From positions 62,001-126,000 of the forward strand of contig MCFH01000037.1 of NCBI GenBank assembly GCA_002104945.1: a stretch of 64,000 bases of DNA, given 5' to 3'. Below are positions 3-13,932 of this stretch, piece after piece. Source of the stretch: Piromyces finnis finn. Taxonomy: Eukaryota; Fungi; Neocallimastigomycota. Position 1 is the stretch's first letter. Each line of letters starts with the position of its first letter. The position numbers were made by a program, and so were the translations under genes. A model generated the notes under the pieces. It made no database searches. It was given only the letters and a program-made list of their open reading frames with translations, and was not told the DNA's origin.

Positions 3-1586
3 AACGAATTAAAAGGTCTTGGTCAAAGATATGGATTTGATATTTCTAAGCCAGCTACAAATGCTAAAGAAGCCATTCAATACACTTACTTTGGCTATCT
101 CGCTAGTGTTAAGGATCAAGATGGAGCAGCCATGTCTTTTGGCCGTGTTGATTGTTTCTTTGATGTATACATCGAAAATGATATGAAGAAAGGAATTTTG
201 ACGGAAGCAGAAGCTCAAGATTTAATCGATCAATTAATCATCAAACTTAGATTAGTTCGTCATTTACGTACTCCTGAATACAATGACTTATTTGCCGGTG
301 ATCCAACATGGGTTACCATGGTTGTTGGTGGTATGGGAATAGATGGAAGACCATTAGTTAGTAAAACTTCTTATCGTATTGTTAATACTCTCAGAACTCT
401 TGGAGCAGCTCCTGAACCAAATATCACCGTTTTATGGAATAATAAACTTCCAACATCTTTCAAAAATTTCTGTAACAAAATTTCAATTGATACTTCATCC
501 ATTCAATATGAAAATGATAATCTCATGAACGATATGTTTGGAGATGACTATGCAATTGCCTGTTGCGTTTCACAAATGAGAATTGGAAAAGATATGCAAT
601 TCTTCGGAGCTCGTTGCAACTTGGCCAAACTTTTACTTTATGCTTTCAATCATGGTTATGATGAAAGAACAGAAAAGCAAGTCGGACCAGATTTCGGAGA
701 TATCAAATTAAATGAAGATGGATCTGTTAATTTCGAATCAGCATGGGAAATTTATGATAAAGCAATGGATTGGATTGCATGTCTTTATGTCAACACCATG
801 AACACCATTCACTACTCTCATGATAGATATTGCTATGAAGCTGTTCAAATGGCATTACACGATACAAATGTTCATCGTTACATGGCATTTGGTATTGCAG
901 GTTTCTCTGTCATTGTTGATTCATTCTCAGCTATTAAGCATGCTAAAGTATTTCCAATTCGTAATCCTGAAACAGGATTAACTACCGACTTCAAAATTGA
1001 AGGCGATTTCCCCAAATTCGGAAATGATGATGATCGTGTTGATCAATTTGCCATTGAACTCCCTAAAATATTCCTTGGTAAATTAAAGAAATATCCAGCA
1101 TACAGAGGAGCAGAACATACATTATCTATTTTAACCATTACATCTAATGTTGTTTATGGTAAGAAGACAGGATCCACACCTGATGGACGTAAAAGTGGAG
1201 AAGCATTTGCACCAGGATGTAATCCAATGCATGGTCGTGAAACTAATGGCGCAGTAGCTTCACTCAATTCCGTTAGTAAAGTTGAATATGAATATTGTAA
1301 AGATGGTATTTCCAATACATTTACATTTGTTCCTACCGTGTTAGGTAAAATTGAAAACGAGCGTATTATTAATCTTACAGGATTATTAGATGGCTACTTT
1401 AGTCAAGGCGGATTCCACCTAAATGTTAATGTTTTAGTTCGTGAAACATTAGAAGATGCCATGATTCATCCCGAAAACTATCCAAACTTAACCATTCGTG
1501 TTTCAGGATATGCAGTTCACTTTATTCGTTTATCACCACAACAACAAAGAGAAGTTATTGCCAGAACTTTCCATGAAACTCTTTAA
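3..1586 (+). CDS. pflB: Pyruvate formate-lyase (formate C-acetyltransferase, glycyl radical enzyme), 5'-truncated by the window edge
   Basis: The frame is open from position 3 ([26 protein letters not shown]...), upstream of the ATG at 132. It carries the active-site Cys-Cys (YAIACCVS) and the C-terminal glycyl-radical motif (TIRVSGYAV). No introns in the visible 1.58 kb. Confidence 0.97.
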
Positions 1587-2085: not shown

Positions 2086-3159
2086 TTATATAACTAAAGT
2101 GGCAATGTTCTTTGAATTATCGAATTTCCAACCTTTGCTCTTAGTGTTTTCAAAGGCCTTATACATATCAGTGTTTGTGAATTTTACAGTAAAAATAGCA
2201 GTTAAATCACCAGCTTTAACATTTCTGTATTTTGGATTGAAAGCGGTAATCCACCAGGCATCCTTACCCCAATTGTCCCATTGGTTAACAATTGTACCTT
2301 TAGTTTTGTGAGTTAAAGTTAAAGTCATTGGCATAGCAAGTGATTTTTTAACTTTCCAGTGTGAATTTTTGCTTGATCCACCGTAATAAATACCAAGTTC
2401 AGCACCAGCACCAAGATTAATATAGTCACCCTTCCAAGCCCAGAGTATATAATTTTCTCCATTGTAAGAGAACATTCCATTATTATTGTAATCCATACTA
2501 GTACCTAAATCAAATATGAAGTCGAAGAATTTATTGTATCCAAATTTAGATTGCCAGCAATCAAAGTCTGCATGATAAATGCCATTGCTATCTTTTTTCA
2601 TATCTAAAATCATGGCACCAAGTTTAGCAGTATCAATACCGAGTTTAACAGCAAAGTCATTAAGATTATGGATAATTGAAGAAACAGCAACTTCTACAAC
2701 ATCCTTTGCTTTATCTCCGACAGTGGAAGCAACATCTTTAACTCCATTTCCAACAGTAGAAGCAGCATTTTTAACACCATTTCCAACAGTGGAAGCAGCA
2801 CCTTTAACACCATTACCAACAGTAGAAGCAGCATCTTTAACACCATTACCAACAGTAGAAGCAGCATCTTTAACTCCATTTCCTACAGTGGAAGCAGCAT
2901 TTTTAACACCATTACCAACAGTGGAAGCAGCATCTTTGACTCCATTACCAACAGTGGAAGCAGCATTTTTAACTCCTTTTCCTACAGTAGAGGCTGCATT
3001 TTTAACCCCATTTCCAGCTTTAGAGACCGTTTTCTTTATTTTTTTTAAAATTCCTCTTTTTTCTATCTCAACAGAATTAGTTGGATAGGCATTAGCAACA
3101 TAGAGGTTAATGAAAATGCAAATAAATAAGAGTACTAAATGATGAGTGCGGAATTTCAT
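2086..3159 (-). CDS. Secreted pre-pro-protein (357 aa): signal peptide, KR site, nine 11-aa repeats, C-terminal domain homologous to the RHS C-terminal domain (DUF4474-like)
   Basis: Hydrophobic N-terminus ending VANA; EKR|G at aa 33-36; repeats GNGVKxAASTV at aa 49-147. The C-domain motifs YHADFDCWQ, WAWKGDYINLGAGAELGIY and WWITAFNP are shared with 6058-6807 and 11544-12224. The DUF4474 label is from recall of the WKGxY..GAE(I/L)GIY motif, not from a search. Confidence 0.88.
   Translation of the reverse strand: MKFRTHHLVLLFICIFINLYVANAYPTNSVEIEKRGILKKIKKTVSKAGNGVKNAASTVGKGVKNAASTVGNGVKDAASTVGNGVKNAASTVGNGVKDAASTVGNGVKDAASTVGNGVKGAASTVGNGVKNAASTVGNGVKDVASTVGDKAKDVVEVAVSSIIHNLNDFAVKLGIDTAKLGAMILDMKKDSNGIYHADFDCWQSKFGYNKFFDFIFDLGTSMDYNNNGMFSYNGENYILWAWKGDYINLGAGAELGIYYGGSSKNSHWKVKKSLAMPMTLTLTHKTKGTIVNQWDNWGKDAWWITAFNPKYRNVKAGDLTAIFTVKFTNTDMYKAFENTKSKGWKFDNSKNIATLVI
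2719..3015 (-). repeat. Coding 33-bp tandem repeat, 9 units (11-aa G[N/K]GVK[N/D/G][A/V]ASTV), followed by a degenerate 10th unit
   Basis: Read directly from the translation and DNA; units differ mostly at synonymous positions and at the N/D site. Confidence 0.95.
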
Positions 3160-6057: not shown

Positions 6058-6807
6058 TTATAAAACTAAAGTAGCAGTACGAGTACTACTATTGAAACTC
6101 CATCCGTTTGGTCTTGTTTTTTCAAAAGCACTGTACATACCAGCATTAGTGAATTTAACAGTAAAGGTAGCAGTTAAATCATTGGCGTTAACATTCTTAT
6201 AATTTGGGTTAAAAGCAGTGATCCACCAAGAATCATTACCTCTGTTATTCCATTGATTAACAATAGTACCTTTAGTTCTGTGAGTTAAAGTTAAAGTCAT
6301 TGGCATAGCATGAGATGGTGCAGCCTTCCAATGAGAGCTTCTGTCTTTTCCACCCATGTAGATACCAAGTTCAGCACCAGCACCAAGGTTAACATAGTCA
6401 CCCTTCCAGGCCCAAAGAATGTAATTTTCCCCATTGTAAGAGAACATTCCATCATTATTGTAAGCCATACTTGTACCTAAATCAAACATATAATCATAGA
6501 AGTTGTTGTAACCAAAGTATTGTTGCCAGCAGTCAAAATCAGCATGATATACACCATTTTCATCTTTTTTCATGTTTAAGAAGAAAGCTCCATACTTGGC
6601 AGTATCGATACCTAATTTAACAGCAACATCATTTCCGGCATGAATAATATTATTAACACCATTAGAGATAGCATCTTTAACGTTATTCCAGAAACTATTC
6701 CAACCTCTTTTTTCAAGTTGGTTAGTGTAAGTTGGTGCAGCATTAGCAACAAAAATGTTAATGAAGCAAACAAATAAAGCAATTAATTGGTGAGTACTGA
6801 TTTTCAT
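6058..6807 (-). CDS. Secreted pre-pro-protein (249 aa), paralog of 2086-3159 without the repeats; free RHS-CT-like (DUF4474-like) domain
   Basis: Signal peptide MKISTHQLIALFVCFINIFVANA, then EKR|GWNSFW (KR at 6706-6711). Long near-identical blocks with paralog 1 (e.g. MPMTLTLTH.TKGTIVNQW). Intronless. Confidence 0.9.
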   Translation of the reverse strand: MKISTHQLIALFVCFINIFVANAAPTYTNQLEKRGWNSFWNNVKDAISNGVNNIIHAGNDVAVKLGIDTAKYGAFFLNMKKDENGVYHADFDCWQQYFGYNNFYDYMFDLGTSMAYNNDGMFSYNGENYILWAWKGDYVNLGAGAELGIYMGGKDRSSHWKAAPSHAMPMTLTLTHRTKGTIVNQWNNRGNDSWWITAFNPNYKNVNANDLTATFTVKFTNAGMYSAFEKTRPNGWSFNSSTRTATLVL

Positions 6808-9701
6808 TTTTGTTTGATTTAGTAATTACTTCAAGTAATTATTTTTTATTTTTTAATTTTTTATTTATTTAATTAAAAAGGTTGAAGGAATTTTTTCTTT
6901 AAATATTTTTTTTTAATATGGCTAATAACCTATTATAAAATATTAAATTATATATAAATTATATATTATAATATATGTATAATACACATTGTATATAAGG
7001 GATAAAAAGCATTATAATAGAATTTAATAAAAGTTTTTAATATATTTGTAACTATATATTAATTAAAATATTTTTAAGACATTTTATTAAAATTTCTTTA
7101 TTATTAAATTCATATTTATTATTTTTTTATAAAAAAGAGTAAAAATAAGTGTTAAAACTATAATAATAATACTCAATTTATTAATACAACAATACTAATT
7201 AATATGTTGAAAAGTATTATTAATTATATTTGTTTTTGTAATGAAACTTTAATTTATAATTTATTTTATATTAATCCTTTACAATTATTAATTTAATAGT
7301 AAGGAAAACTGATAAATTTAAATTACATTATACAGAATTATTAAATATAGAAATAAAATATACATCAATTATTATTTTGATTTATTATTAATTTTATTCT
7401 AATTATTATACATTGTATCAGTTTAATTATATTTAATATTTTTAAAAAATTTAAACATATTATTTTTTCATAAAATAAAAATTCCTTTTTTTAAAAAAAT
7501 AATTAATACAGTGAATAAAATAGAATAAAATATAAATAATATAAATTTAAATTTATAAAATTCATATGGCTTTTAAATGGTTTAAGAATATATTAAAAAA
7601 GTAAAAATAATAATAAATATAAAGCTTTAGTATTATATTTCATAGATTTAAATGATTAAGTATTTTCCAAATTTGACAAAATTAAAGCCATTGAGTAACA
7701 AAATTTTTATCAACCAAATATTACTTCTAACCAAATCATATATAATTTGTATAATTAGTTTTATTTTTTCAAGTAATACAAATACAAATATCAATATATT
7801 ATTATTAATAATAATCAAGTAATATCAATTATCAGTAGAACAATAACGATAATTAATATTACATTTTCTATTTCAAAAAAATTGATTTCATTAATCAAAA
7901 TCTTTTCTGAGTGACTAATAAATTAAAATATAATTATTTCGATTATAGAAACTTTTTTAAGAAAAATTGAAAAAAAAATATGTATATATTGAATCATTAT
8001 TATAATGATATTACAATTATAATATAATCATTCATTTTATTATATAATATTTAATATATATGTATTTTTTTTAATATATATATTCCCCATAAGAGTGTTA
8101 CTATTATGCTATTTATTTTAAAAGCGAAATATTAATAATTTTGATTTAATTATTATAAATAATTATTAATAACATACATATAAATATATAAGTGAAATAA
8201 TAAAAAATAAATAAATAAATAATAAATAAATTAACAATAATAATAACTATTTTATTATTTATTTAAATTTACGCATACTAATAATAAAAACAATGTAAAA
8301 GTGAAGCTAATTTATTAATTTATTACAAATCAACTGTTTTTTACAATATATGCTAATATTTTTTTTTTTTCGTTTTTGTTATTTTATCATTATTTACTAT
8401 TTCATTTAATACTTTCTTTCGTTTTTTATTTTAATATGTAAAAGTGCGTTAGTATATAGGCACTTTTCTATATTTATGCAATATCCATGATATCTATTTC
8501 ATGTATTTTTATTTATAATCTTTTTTTTTTTGATATTTTTTTTTTTTTTAAAAAGAAATTATTGGTAAAACAATTTTTTATCATTATTAACATAATTTTT
8601 ATTATTGTTATTTTAATTATTTTAATTAATATTTTTTATTAAAACAACAAAAAAAAATTAAATAAAAACTAAATAATAAATCTTAGAATATTCTAAACAT
8701 TCTATTTTGATGAATAAAATTTGGAATAATATTTTTTAATTATTTATAAAGAAATAAGCTTTTTTTTTTTATTATTAATTTTTCTTATAGCTCTAAAACT
8801 TAAACAAAATAGGATAATAAAGGAAAATAAGGTAAATTAAAAAATAAATAAAAAGTTGTTACAATAATAATTTAACTAATTATTAATTTTTATCTGCATT
8901 TCTATAATTTCTATATTATAATTATTGAAGAGTAAATAATGTTTTTTTTTTTTAAAAAAAGAGCAATTTTATAGGTTCTTAATTAATTTAAATAATCTTT
9001 TTTTTTTTGAGTAAAATAAAAAAATAAAATTTCTATTTGAATATATAAAATAATAAATAGTTTTTAATTTAATACGTCATTATATTTTAACAAATAAGAT
9101 ATATTTGAAATATAGAATTGTATTTTATGAATAATAAATATTTAACAATGTTAAATAAAATTAATTTTTAAATATTCCTTATCATAATACATTAAATACT
9201 TTTATTTTATTTTTATAAATAAATTTTATTTAACATGTAGAATAATAATTTTGTAAGGCAAACATGGATTAATTATATATTAAATATATAAATATTGTAA
9301 TTATTTATAATTATAATAATTAACTGTTACAAGTATTTTTTTTTTTTTTTTTTTTTTTTTGGTGGTTATGTACTTTTCTTTTTTTTAAGAACAATAGTAA
9401 TGTAGTAAATTTTAATATATTTATATATATTATATTATTATATTGTATTATTTAATGAGTAATTTAATATATGAAAATGATTGATTTTTGGCTTTGGTGA
9501 TAATACATATAAAAAAAGGTATAAAAGGGATAGAAAAAATATGTTTTTATTTAAATATTAAAACCGAAAAAAAAAAAAAGAAAAGAAAAGAAAGAAAAAT
9601 AAAAATAAAAGAAAAATAAAAATAAAAGAAAAAAAAAATAAAAAGTAAAAATAAATAATTAATTGAAATAAATAAAAAATAGAATATAAAAATATTAAGA
9701 A

Positions 9702-12224
9702 ATGCAATATTGCAATTTTTATACAGTAATATTTTTTATTATAAATTATATTACTTTTTCTGTTAAGGCTATAGATGACTTAAATAGTTATGATATAGCT
9801 CAAAATGTTAATGATTTATCCTATAATACAAAAGAAGAAATTAACCAAGATATCATTAATTCTTTAGAATCTAATAACTTTGTTGAATCTGTTGTTAATA
9901 CTACTACCTTTGAAGATGTTAATCTTTTGACTGATGTTAAAGAATTCGATAATGCTATTATCGTAAATGAATTCATGTATGAAAAAGATAAGGTTTATAG
10001 TTTTACCCACAATAACATCACTTACTCTTTTGAATATGAAGGAAACAATGTTATTAGAGTTAGCATTGGCGAAAAAACTTTTGTTGAAAATAGTTATGAT
10101 GGTAACATTATAACTTCAAGAAAATATGGAAATGGTGATGTTATTTCTTCTTTCTACGATAAAAATATTGGTAGATTGATTACTCAAAAAATAAATGATG
10201 TTGATTCTTACCAATGGACTTACAATGATAATGGATCTATTTCATCATTCATGGATTTAACTCTAAAGGATAAGATTGAATATATTTACAATGAAGCTGG
10301 TATTCTTTCTGAACAAGTTTCTACTTCTGGATTTGCTATTAGTTTTGATACAATTATTGATGATGGAATTGATACTGTAACCTACAAGTATGGTGAAGAA
10401 ATAAAGAGTAGAACTGTTAGCAACGATATTAAAACTATTTCCGATATTTCTGGTGATGGAGAAGAAACCAATTATTCTACCGAAATAATTGTTACTCATT
10501 TAATTTCTGATGATCAAGTTGTTACTAATAAAAATAATGATTTGATAGAATCCAAAACAATTTATAGTAATAATCAAAGTATCTTAAATACCGAATTTAC
10601 TTATGAAGATGAATTAATTAAAAAAGTTAAATATCAAGATGGTAAAACTATTCAATATTCCTATGATGAAAACTTCAAATTAATTGGAGTTTATAATGAT
10701 AATAAGTTAGTAAGTAGTTATAACTATGATCAACTTGGTCAATTAATAAGAGAAAACCATGCTGTCTTAGGAAAAAGTATTGTCTACAAATATGATAATA
10801 ATAGCAATATAATTTCTGCGGATTATTATGAATATAGTACCGGTGAATTATTAAATAAACTTTATTCTAAAGTATTTTCATATAAAAACATTGAATGGAC
10901 CGATGAATTAACAAATATTAATGGAGAAGAAATCCAATATGATCAATCAGGAAACCCACTTACCTACCGTAATAACATGACTCTTGAATGGAAGGCTAAA
11001 ACTGTTGTTTCAATGAAAAGTTCAGAATTCACTATTAATTATACTTATAATAACAATAATATTAGAACATCTAAAACTGTAAATGGTATTACTACTAAAT
11101 ACTATTTAGATGGAAATAAGATTATATTAGAAATTACAGAAGGTCAAAAAAAATGGTATATTTATGATGAAGAAAACAAAATTATTGGATTTATTTTCAA
11201 TGATAATACATATTACTTTGAAAAGAATATTCAAAATGATGTTACTCGTATCTTTAATAACAACGGAGAATATGTTAGTGAATATATTTACGATGCATGG
11301 GGTAATATTATTGGTATTTTAGGAGATGACACTATTGCCAGAGCCAATCCATTTAGATATCGTAGTTACTATCAAGATAATGAAACAGAACTCTATTATT
11401 TACAAGCTAGATATTACGATAGTTTTGTTGGTAGATTTATCAGTGCAGATATTTTCTTAGGAGCTAATGAAGGTGTTGATATCTATAATTTATTTGTCTA
11501 CTGTGGTAATGATCCAGTTAGTAGATATGATGAAACTGGTATGTCATGGAGTAGTTTCTGGAAGGCTGTTAAAAATGTTGTAAAGAAAGTAGTTTCCACT
11601 GTATTACATGTTGTTAATACTATTGCTGTTAAAATCGGTATTGATACTGCTGCTATTGGTGCTTTATTTTTAGATATGAAAAAAGTTAATGGGGTTTACC
11701 ATGCAAATTTTGATTGTTGGCAATCGCTTTTTGGATACACAAAATTCTATGATATTATATTTGATATTGGTACAAGTATGTTACCTAATACTGATGGTCG
11801 TTTTTCATATAATAATCAAAACTATATTTTATGGGCTTGGAAGGGTGATTATATCAATTTAGGAGCTGGTGCTGAACTTGGTATATATAAGGGTGGAACA
11901 AGTCTTGAATCATACTGGGCTGTCGATAAAAATTTAGCTATGCCAATGACTTTAAAGGTATGGAAAAATAGCAAACAAATTATAGATTGGACTGACACCC
12001 ATTGGTGGATCACAGGTTTTAATCCATCATATCTTAATAATGATGCTAAGAATTTAACTGTTCAATTCACTGTTCAATTTGATATTAAAAAGAATAGAAA
12101 TGACAAAAACATTGATGTAAACTTTAGTAATGGAATGTATTCCGCGTTCTGTGAATCTATAAGTTTATTAAAAACAAAATCATGGCAATGTAATGGAAAT
12201 AGAAAAGCTACTTTATCCTTTTAA
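9702..12224 (+). CDS. RHS/YD-repeat protein (840 aa) with N-terminal signal peptide, RHS-associated core and DUF4474-like C-terminal domain
   Basis: Signal-like N-terminus ending VKA; YD-type repeats (YSYDENFKL, YNYDQLGQL, YKYDNNSNI, YDQSGNP, YIYDAWGNI); core NPFRYRSYYQDNETELYYLQARYYDSFVGRFISAD...NLFVYCGNDPVSRYDETG (11346-11540). Intronless. Confidence 0.93.
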   Translation: MQYCNFYTVIFFIINYITFSVKAIDDLNSYDIAQNVNDLSYNTKEEINQDIINSLESNNFVESVVNTTTFEDVNLLTDVKEFDNAIIVNEFMYEKDKVYSFTHNNITYSFEYEGNNVIRVSIGEKTFVENSYDGNIITSRKYGNGDVISSFYDKNIGRLITQKINDVDSYQWTYNDNGSISSFMDLTLKDKIEYIYNEAGILSEQVSTSGFAISFDTIIDDGIDTVTYKYGEEIKSRTVSNDIKTISDISGDGEETNYSTEIIVTHLISDDQVVTNKNNDLIESKTIYSNNQSILNTEFTYEDELIKKVKYQDGKTIQYSYDENFKLIGVYNDNKLVSSYNYDQLGQLIRENHAVLGKSIVYKYDNNSNIISADYYEYSTGELLNKLYSKVFSYKNIEWTDELTNINGEEIQYDQSGNPLTYRNNMTLEWKAKTVVSMKSSEFTINYTYNNNNIRTSKTVNGITTKYYLDGNKIILEITEGQKKWYIYDEENKIIGFIFNDNTYYFEKNIQNDVTRIFNNNGEYVSEYIYDAWGNIIGILGDDTIARANPFRYRSYYQDNETELYYLQARYYDSFVGRFISADIFLGANEGVDIYNLFVYCGNDPVSRYDETGMSWSSFWKAVKNVVKKVVSTVLHVVNTIAVKIGIDTAAIGALFLDMKKVNGVYHANFDCWQSLFGYTKFYDIIFDIGTSMLPNTDGRFSYNNQNYILWAWKGDYINLGAGAELGIYKGGTSLESYWAVDKNLAMPMTLKVWKNSKQIIDWTDTHWWITGFNPSYLNNDAKNLTVQFTVQFDIKKNRNDKNIDVNFSNGMYSAFCESISLLKTKSWQCNGNRKATLSF

Positions 12225-13293: not shown

Positions 13294-13932
13294 TCAGTTA
13301 ATGTCAAGTTTAAAGATCCAATTTTTTAGATTTTTATTATTATAGGTTAAAGTATCGTGGTGATATATTTCAAAACCATTCTTTTTATAAAAGAAAGTAT
13401 TTTTTTCAGAATTGGTAATCAAGGTAAGATGCTGACCTCCTCTTTTTTTAACAAAAGGAATAACACATTCATTAATCATACGACTACCAATGTTTTGACC
13501 GATACATTCTTTCATTACAGCAATACATTCTAAATTAAAACATGGATTAGTTTTAGCATATTCTAAACGAGGTGCGTTGCAATGATCCATCATATCTAAA
13601 AATCCAAAGGTATTTTTAAAACCACCATTAATTAATATTGATAGAGCACCATATAAAAAATATCTTGGTACACTTGGTTCTTTATGCTTTTCATCTTGTA
13701 TCATTGAAACACATATAATTTTATTATCACGTTCAGCAACCATAACAGTATCATTTGTCATTGCATCATAAAGTTGAACACTCATAATTGCCTTGTTAAA
13801 TTTTTGTTGTTTTTTTTCTGAACTTGTTTTCCATATTTGATAAACTGAATACTCTTTGAATGCACTATATACAACTTCAAGACATTCGTCAAAATCCTTT
13901 TTGGTTGCTACTCTATAACTAATATTACTCAT
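13294..13932 (-). CDS. GNAT-family N-acetyltransferase, intronless, bacterial-like
   Basis: N-terminal YRVATKKDFDE; motif A-like LECIAVMKECIGQNIGSRMI; motif B-like LITNSEKNTFFYKKNGF. Confidence 0.85.
   Translation of the reverse strand: MSNISYRVATKKDFDECLEVVYSAFKEYSVYQIWKTSSEKKQQKFNKAIMSVQLYDAMTNDTVMVAERDNKIICVSMIQDEKHKEPSVPRYFLYGALSILINGGFKNTFGFLDMMDHCNAPRLEYAKTNPCFNLECIAVMKECIGQNIGSRMINECVIPFVKKRGGQHLTLITNSEKNTFFYKKNGFEIYHHDTLTYNNKNLKNWIFKLDIN

Follow-up and report, generated by a model that had tools for sequence, protein, structure and literature searches.

The window analyzed here is a stretch of 64,000 nucleotides from the anaerobic gut fungus Piromyces finnis (contig MCFH01000037.1, positions 62,001 to 126,000). 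It contains three genes with a DUF4474 domain (PF14751), which lie within 10 kb of each other and are the only DUF4474 copies in the genome (56.5 Mb in 232 contigs searched). One encodes an RHS protein that carries DUF4474 at its C terminus, and the other two (paralogs 1 and 2) encode free DUF4474 proteins that are predicted to be secreted. The three domains score 66.9, 57.9, and 50.7 bits (cut-off 23) over profile positions 15-164 of 240. Signal peptides of the RHS protein and of the paralogs were read from the sequence, with no predictor. The features of the locus are as follows, with an arrow marking each predicted cleavage bond here and below.

2086-3159, minus strand: paralog 1, a free, predicted secreted DUF4474 protein of 357 amino acids, intronless, with a leader ending EIEKR35↓G36 (open reading frame [ORF], Pfam)
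2716-3016, minus strand: 33-bp tandem array in paralog 1, 9.1 copies, encoding 11-residue units GNGVKNAASTV (Tandem Repeats Finder, 87% matches)
6058-6807, minus strand: paralog 2, a free, predicted secreted DUF4474 protein of 249 amino acids, intronless, about 51% identical to the C-terminal domain of the RHS protein (ORF, Pfam)
6061-6705, minus strand: predicted mature paralog 2, G35-L249, an N-terminal helix and a beta-sandwich (AlphaFold 2 [AF2] model, predicted local distance difference test [pLDDT] 89, predicted template-modeling score [pTM] 0.85)
6706-6807, minus strand: predicted pre-pro leader of paralog 2, signal peptide 1-23 and pro-piece APTYTNQLEKR 24-34, with K33-R34 at 6706-6711 (sequence, homologs)
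9702-12224, plus strand: RHS-DUF4474 gene, intact, intronless, 840 amino acids (ORF; Pfam RHS_repeat and DUF4474; NCBIfam Rhs_assc_core and YD_repeat_2x)
9702-9770, plus strand: predicted eukaryotic signal peptide of the RHS protein, residues 1-23, FSVKA↓IDD (hydrophobic core and small residues at -3/-1, by eye)
9921-11543, plus strand: YD-repeat shell and RHS-associated core, residues 74-614 (collinear with residues 470-1004 of the bacterial protein P0248, 44% identity)
11448-11450, plus strand: Asp583 in GRFISAD, putative first autoprotease aspartate (invariant alignment column; equivalent to RhsA D1324 by motif)
11529-11546, plus strand: D610-E-T-G-M614↓S615, second aspartate and predicted self-cleavage bond (invariant D610 and G613; end of TIGR03696)
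11544-12221, plus strand: C-terminal domain of the RHS protein (RHS-CT), putative DUF4474 toxin domain, residues 615-840, with an N-terminal amphipathic helix (PF14751, E 2.3e-18; helix moment z = 3.5)

Two predicted release sites in one register

A preliminary description of this DNA had quoted junction strings for the three proteins, and all of them are present where it had placed them. In the RHS protein the junction reads SRYDETGM614↓S615WSSFWKAVKN, and in paralog 2 it reads TNQLEKR34↓G35WNSFWNNVKD. In a local tblastn alignment, W616 (residue 2 of RHS-CT) aligns with window position 6702, which belongs to the codon of W36 in paralog 2. RHS-CT and mature paralog 2 each have one residue before this tryptophan and 21 before the next conserved histidine, with no gap. 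The alignment confirms that the predicted bonds M614↓S615 of the RHS protein and R34↓G35 of paralog 2 are equivalent to the residue, and the pairing of the predicted N-termini SWSSFW and GWNSFW in the preliminary description is borne out. The bacterial RHS-DUF4474 proteins, which belong to rumen and gut Bacillota such as Ruminococcus, have the junction D-x-x-G-x↓[S/F]-W, and P2′ is a Trp in 123 of 134 (92%). Because 12 of 15 gut-fungal clusters have a kexin-type site (see below) and the bacterial junctions repeat [S/F]-W, the match of register exceeds, on sequence comparison, what chance would give.

Paralog 1 has the EKR↓G junction that had been ascribed to it (VEIEKR35↓G36ILKKIKK), and a different N-terminus follows the same type of leader. 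Behind the leader, nine 11-residue repeats lengthen the N-terminal helical region. Repeats of 11 residues are typical of lipid-surface helices, and paralog 1 has weak Pfam matches to ApoLp-III and Senescence. A genome search found the pre-pro leader only in paralogs 1 and 2. An ORF of 169 amino acids antisense to the repeat array (2579-3088, plus strand) most likely exists only because of the 33-bp repeat and is not a gene.

RHS gene and its predicted self-cleavage

The C-terminal self-cleavage of RhsA and Rhs1 takes place one residue past the glycine of DPxG, as established by structures and mutants (PMC8765631, PMC8636562). In RhsA the motif aspartate is D1346 and the density ends after W1350; in Rhs1, D1338 lies within DPLGL and the toxin begins at A1343; and two aspartates are required for self-cleavage in both (PMC8765631, PMC8636562). 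The cleavage rule used in the preliminary description, one residue past DxxG, is thus the one demonstrated for these two proteins. D583, D610, and G613 of the fungal protein occupy invariant columns in an alignment of 41 RHS homologs. TIGR03696 (Rhs_assc_core) matches its residues 530-614 over 76 of 76 positions (64.8 bits, cut-off 32.5), and, because this full-length match stops at M614, the RHS core is taken to end there. The canonical proline of DPxG is a glutamate in the fungus, but it is present in just 2 of 83 members of the bacterial RHS-DUF4474 subfamily, and DETGM is therefore normal for the subfamily. By homology, the fungal RHS protein should cleave itself between M614 and S615.

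The remainder of the protein is also of RHS type. Its YD repeats are recognized by PF05593 (E 9e-9) and TIGR01643, and shell residues 74-614 align collinearly, at 42-47% identity, with bacterial proteins about 1,100-1,200 amino acids long. In place of the ~470-amino-acid TSP3-repeat N-terminal region of these bacterial relatives, the fungal protein has about 70 residues with a signal-peptide-like start. The AF2 model of the shell consists entirely of beta-hairpins, with strands across residues 90-580 at a pLDDT of 80-94, and a Foldseek search with it retrieved Rhs, TcC, and teneurin structures at E <= 1e-17. The gene is the sole RHS copy in the genome. At the level of sequence, it has the defining parts of an RHS polymorphic toxin, leaving aside the immunity gene and the closure of its shell.

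Kexin-type sites in gut-fungal homologs

Free homologs of the paralogs are present in other gut fungi: Piromyces sp. E2 has two such genes in tandem, and further ones were found in Neocallimastix californiae and N. lanati, in both genera within an AT-rich fungal chromosomal context. The gut-fungal free homologs with complete N-termini form 15 clusters (Piromyces and Neocallimastix). In twelve of them, a signal peptide is followed by a pro-piece of ~11 residues that ends in [L/I/V/M/F]-E-[K/R]-R, such that P4 is always L, I, V, M, or F and P3 is Glu. The pro-pieces otherwise differ, which suggests that the site itself is under constraint. Kex2 prefers a hydrophobic P4, and the hydrophobic P4 of the fungal clusters fits this preference. 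The residue after the K/R-R site is Gly in 10 of the 12 site-bearing clusters, and it is followed by Trp (G-W) in 7 of them.

Kexin homologs are present in the genome: three loci encode a P_proprotein domain, one of them in one open frame with Peptidase_S8. By their sequences, then, the paralogs qualify as kexin-processed pro-proteins, and the kexin route put forward in the preliminary description is plausible given the conserved site, its invariably hydrophobic P4, and the P_proprotein genes. The same description had asked whether the register is conserved in homologs and had held that the mature N-terminus was kept. The first of these is upheld for the dibasic site (12 of 15 clusters) and for the bacterial Trp (123 of 134), and falls short for G-W, which is limited to 7 of 12 fungal clusters. 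The second is true of the paralog-2 lineage and of those seven clusters, and not of paralog 1 or of forms that start with N-I-F or N-F-I. Repeat proteins processed by Kex2 were predicted earlier for Neocallimastix and Piromyces (PMC7329392), and the substrates of Kex2 have been reviewed (PMC2515848).

Phylogeny and the direction of change

To place the three genes, we used a maximum-likelihood tree of the core domain, with the leader and the N-terminal helix left out (57 rows, including 32 bacterial RHS domains). The 32 bacterial RHS domains are split from all eukaryote-type sequences with support of 99/99, and the fungal RHS-CT is sister to all free forms (97/87); a quick tree of 131 rows agrees. 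The fungal RHS-CT and the paralog-2 lineage have in common the motif W-x-[S/T]-F-W and a distance of 51-52 residues from the cut to YHAxFDCW. W-x-[S/T]-F-W is found in none of 83 bacterial junctions, where the spacing is mostly 41 or 48 (range, 37 to 59).

The change from the RHS form to the free form, as proposed in the preliminary description, agrees with the sister position of RHS-CT relative to the bacterial outgroup and with the common motif and spacing. Given the tree, this derived motif and spacing, and the linkage within 10 kb, we favor a single transfer, after which the RHS form would have been retained in this lineage and the payload later freed with a new leader. Traffic of toxin-system genes into Neocallimastigomycota has a precedent, since a preprint describes the transfer of a Ruminococcus immunity gene into these fungi (10.1101/2020.10.15.341461). 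In a literature search, neither DUF4474 nor RHS genes of Neocallimastigomycota came up in any paper.

Fold, candidate immunity partner, and possible target

The AF2 model of mature paralog 2 combines a beta-sandwich with two helices, one long and N-terminal (residues 2-30) and one short. All 10 fungal proteins tested are significantly amphipathic over the first 22 residues of the mature chain, and 11-residue repeats lengthen the N-terminal region in several relatives of paralog 1 as well as in paralog 1. DUF4474 matched no PDB sequence profile, and its model matched no PDB structure in Foldseek. In the wide VIA comparison of folds, the best Z was 6.1 (velvet domain and MspA rim), which is within noise, and in the ESM Atlas DUF4474 matched only DUF4474 clusters.

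Gene neighborhoods offer another line of evidence. In four of four bacterial loci read, a DUF5104 (PF17117) gene lies directly downstream of the RHS-DUF4474 gene (strand not given):

L008, 6985-7566: DUF5104 gene after an RHS-DUF4474 gene
L009, 5474-6025: DUF5104 gene after an RHS-DUF4474 gene
L010, 6243-7217: DUF5104 gene after an RHS-DUF4474 gene
L019, 5595-6119: DUF5104 gene after an RHS-DUF4474 gene

A lipoprotein signal ending in L-S-S-C is present in two of the three DUF5104 start sequences read. DUF5104 is therefore a candidate immunity family for DUF4474. Because this partner appears to be exported, the toxin would act outside the cytoplasm, most likely at the outer side of the envelope of the target cell. 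Unlike the bacterial loci, the fungal RHS gene has no cognate immunity gene directly downstream. DUF5104 was not found in the fungal genome or in the window, although the genome-wide blank carries little weight because control genomes lack the family too. If the toxin acts on the envelope from outside, secretion alone would suffice for the fungus, which would explain the lack of a DUF5104 gene there.

DUF4474 was also seen on other carriers. In the ESM Atlas, a 63-member Bacillota cluster joins a type I dockerin to DUF4474, and the domain thus appears to be displayed on cellulosome-type scaffolds as well as on RHS proteins. Three metagenomic proteins from ENA (P0188, P0204, and P0221; 870-950 amino acids) combine DNase II or Endonuclease_1 with a C-terminal DUF4474 core. 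Their genes lie on contigs of 3-4 kb, one of which (L013, 1-4070) has back-to-back GGGGATT / CCCCAAT repeats that resemble the telomeres of rumen ciliate mini-chromosomes. In the tree, these ciliate-type fusions group together as one clade (100/98) inside the gut-fungal free forms, a position that suggests transfer between fungus and ciliate. Two further metagenomic proteins, P0143 and P0151, are membrane-anchored and Cys-rich (Ephrin_rec_like, NCD3G, and VSP-like repeats) with DUF4474 at the end, and represent another eukaryote-type carrier of the payload.

Proposed history and alternatives

From the observed sequences, register, site conservation, phylogeny, and gene neighborhoods, we propose a history that we hold to be moderately probable: transfer of the gene, duplication of its payload, and replacement of RHS self-cleavage by a kexin-cleaved leader at the same bond, yielding an envelope-directed toxin. 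An ancestor of the anaerobic gut fungi would have acquired a Bacillota-type RHS polymorphic-toxin gene with a C-terminal DUF4474 payload. The RHS form would survive in this genome; a eukaryotic signal peptide would have taken over the position of the bacterial N-terminal region, and both autoprotease aspartates are kept. The payload would have been duplicated nearby and given a fungal pre-pro leader, made up of a signal peptide and a pro-piece of ~11 amino acids ending in a hydrophobic residue, Glu, and K/R-R. A kexin of the Golgi would remove this leader by cutting behind its Arg, at the alignment equivalent of the RHS self-cleavage bond. Both routes would then free a domain that starts with one small residue, usually followed by Trp, and continues with an amphipathic helix and the beta-sandwich. 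The secreted domain may act against bacterial envelopes, with a part in this for its N-terminal helix.

Several observations weigh against this history or parts of it. The fungal shell, at ~540 amino acids, is roughly the size of the TcC half-shell, and the full-length AF2 model packs poorly (pTM 0.48, with pLDDT <50 at residues 584-614). That the short fungal shell forms a closed cage is unproven, and the word “cage” in the preliminary description went too far. The calling of DUF4474 a toxin and of the envelope its target is drawn from context, because its fold matches nothing of known function. The RHS form was not found in the other gut-fungal genomes or metagenomes examined, for which reason its ancestral status is argued from the tree and the linkage. 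A scan of JGI (Joint Genome Institute) metagenomes for close RHS orthologs returned one relative only, 31% identical, and no relics of an RHS shell were found beside the free genes in this window, Piromyces sp. E2, or Neocallimastix. Finally, the exact N-terminus is not invariant, as seen in paralog 1, the N-I-F forms, and the ciliate fusions, the last of which have neither the N-terminal helix nor a visible cleavage site. The preliminary description had taken a free N-terminus at this exact place to matter for function; the sequences back such a need only in part, and paralog 1 and the ciliate fusions argue against a strict form of it.

This last point leads to an alternative that is possible, though we think it clearly the less probable one. 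The common register could simply be an inherited domain boundary, with the leader joined where homology starts; the kexin site would be real, and the exact N-terminus would have no special role. Such a boundary would suit the free variation around the junction: the distance to the conserved His is 21 residues in paralog 2 versus about 150 in paralog 1, positions P1′-P3′ are GIL, NIF, or NFI in several lineages, and helix length varies in bacteria too, as the range of their spacings indicates. It would also suit the ciliate and Cys-rich fusions, which carry the beta-sandwich core behind other domains, with neither helix nor dibasic site. It accounts poorly, however, for the Trp that is the second residue in 92% of the bacterial junctions and for the G-W of seven fungal clusters, a start that is kept even where 11-mer repeats have been inserted behind it. 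Because G-W persists in such proteins, the extreme N-terminus appears to be kept while the helix grows internally.

We regard as improbable that the RHS and free forms arrived by separate transfers, or that the RHS gene is a late arrival whose C-terminal domain was converted by resident copies, so that the free forms were never caged. The missing RHS genes and relics in the other gut-fungal genomes examined would be expected in that case, and the nearest relatives of the shell bear other toxin domains, such as AHH and Ntox35. Yet the three genes are linked, RHS-CT and the paralog-2 lineage have the derived W-x-[S/T]-F-W motif and spacing in common, and RHS-CT sits basally in the eukaryotic clade, neither within the bacteria nor, as recent gene conversion would lead one to expect, within the free forms. 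Least credible of all, and in our estimate very unlikely, is that K/R-R is not a processing site and the pro-piece stays on, that the genes are silent, or that the DNA is bacterial contamination. Cleavage and expression do come to us by inference. Nevertheless, the conservation of K/R-R amid variable pro-pieces and the hydrophobic P4 speak for processing, while silence is at odds with ORFs that stay intact at 10-30% GC, where stop codons arise readily, and with the share of sequence words in four sequencing runs, which fits transcripts (see below). Contamination is rejected because of the AT-rich fungal context, the 541-kb fungal contig, and the eukaryotic neighbors, and the orthologs lie in chromosomal contexts of Neocallimastix and Piromyces.

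Beyond the history of transfer and leader replacement, a bolder extension can be drawn, which we put forward as speculative and on balance rather doubtful. DUF4474 would define a novel type of toxin aimed at the envelope or membrane, with a Trp-capped amphipathic N-terminal helix that must be freed for activity. Rumen bacteria, gut fungi, and rumen ciliates would have exchanged it, each with its own release device, whether self-cleavage of an RHS protein, cutting by kexin, or a fusion to DNase II and other carriers. The fungus would, in addition, secrete a working RHS-encapsulated toxin through the endoplasmic reticulum.

Comparison with known systems

RHS toxins such as RhsA of Pseudomonas protegens, Rhs1 of Photorhabdus laumondii, and TcC have the same YD repeats, a core ending in D-x-x-G-x, two aspartates, and a C-terminal toxin directly after it. 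The fungal gene differs from them in its nuclear location, in having a eukaryotic signal peptide in place of a delivery domain, in the missing immunity gene, in its shorter shell (~540 amino acids), and in the absence of the Pro of DPxGL. Teneurins are animal descendants of bacterial YD toxins with predicted furin-type sites near their C-terminal peptides, and their conserved C-terminal region forms an uncleaved plug of the YD shell (PMC8765631, PMC8636562). Like the fungal locus, they represent a bacterial YD/RHS toxin in a eukaryote with convertase-type sites near the C-terminal part. However, teneurins retained the shell and became adhesion receptors, whereas the fungal paralogs dropped it and have their convertase site exactly at the old self-cleavage bond. 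The fungal proteins, unlike teneurins, likely have a role as toxins.

The domesticated amidase effectors (dae) of ticks and other eukaryotes, reportedly described by Chou et al. in Nature in 2015, are said to come from type VI amidase effectors of known activity. As in the fungal forms, an interbacterial toxin in a eukaryote has gained a secretion signal and has neither delivery machine nor immunity gene. The difference is that the fungal locus holds the ancestral RHS form and the liberated forms together, and their coexistence in one locus makes the swap of release mechanism directly visible.

Among Kex2-processed fungal proteins, alpha-factor, the K1 and K28 killer toxins, and KEP proteins have, as the paralogs do, a signal peptide and a short pro-piece that ends in Lys-Arg or Arg-Arg with a hydrophobic P4. 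The paralogs differ from them in their bacterial payload, in having one cleavage site rather than repeats, and in having no sequence relation to killer toxins: searches of Pfam, PDB sequences, and folds gave no match to K1 or K28, or to anything besides DUF4474. The term “killer-toxin-style” in the preliminary description is apt for the design of the leader, as an analogy, and not as a statement of homology.

The novelty lies in the presence, at one locus, of the ancestral release device next to the derived one, with both predicted to act on the same bond. The locus would thus preserve the “before” (RHS and autoprotease) and the “after” (pre-pro leader and kexin site) of a domesticated bacterial toxin, and these two states at one bond make the re-tooling of contact-dependent into diffusible toxins by eukaryotes directly testable. 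The locus also provides a first functional handle on DUF4474, in the form of the candidate lipoprotein immunity partner DUF5104 and the amphipathic N-terminus, and it points to exchange of toxin domains among rumen bacteria, fungi, and ciliates.

Genomic setting and expression

The window has a GC content of 10-30% with many low-complexity eukaryotic ORFs, and the closest named relatives of its proteins are from Piromyces sp. E2 and Neocallimastix. Four sequencing runs from three studies of one organism hold 0.45-0.54 of the sampled words, and the stretch is 0.52 coding; this share is compatible with transcripts of both genes, without amounting to proof. One kilobase past the RHS gene, on the opposite strand, lies an intronless ORF of 212 amino acids (13294-13932, minus strand) whose GNAT-type match (Sat4 streptothricin acetyltransferase, E 2.5e-5) is weak and falls far short of the cut-off. 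It is unrelated to DUF5104 and may be bacterial in origin. Near the start of the window (132-1586, plus strand) is the C-terminal part of a pyruvate formate-lyase gene, which is typical of hydrogenosome-bearing anaerobic fungi.

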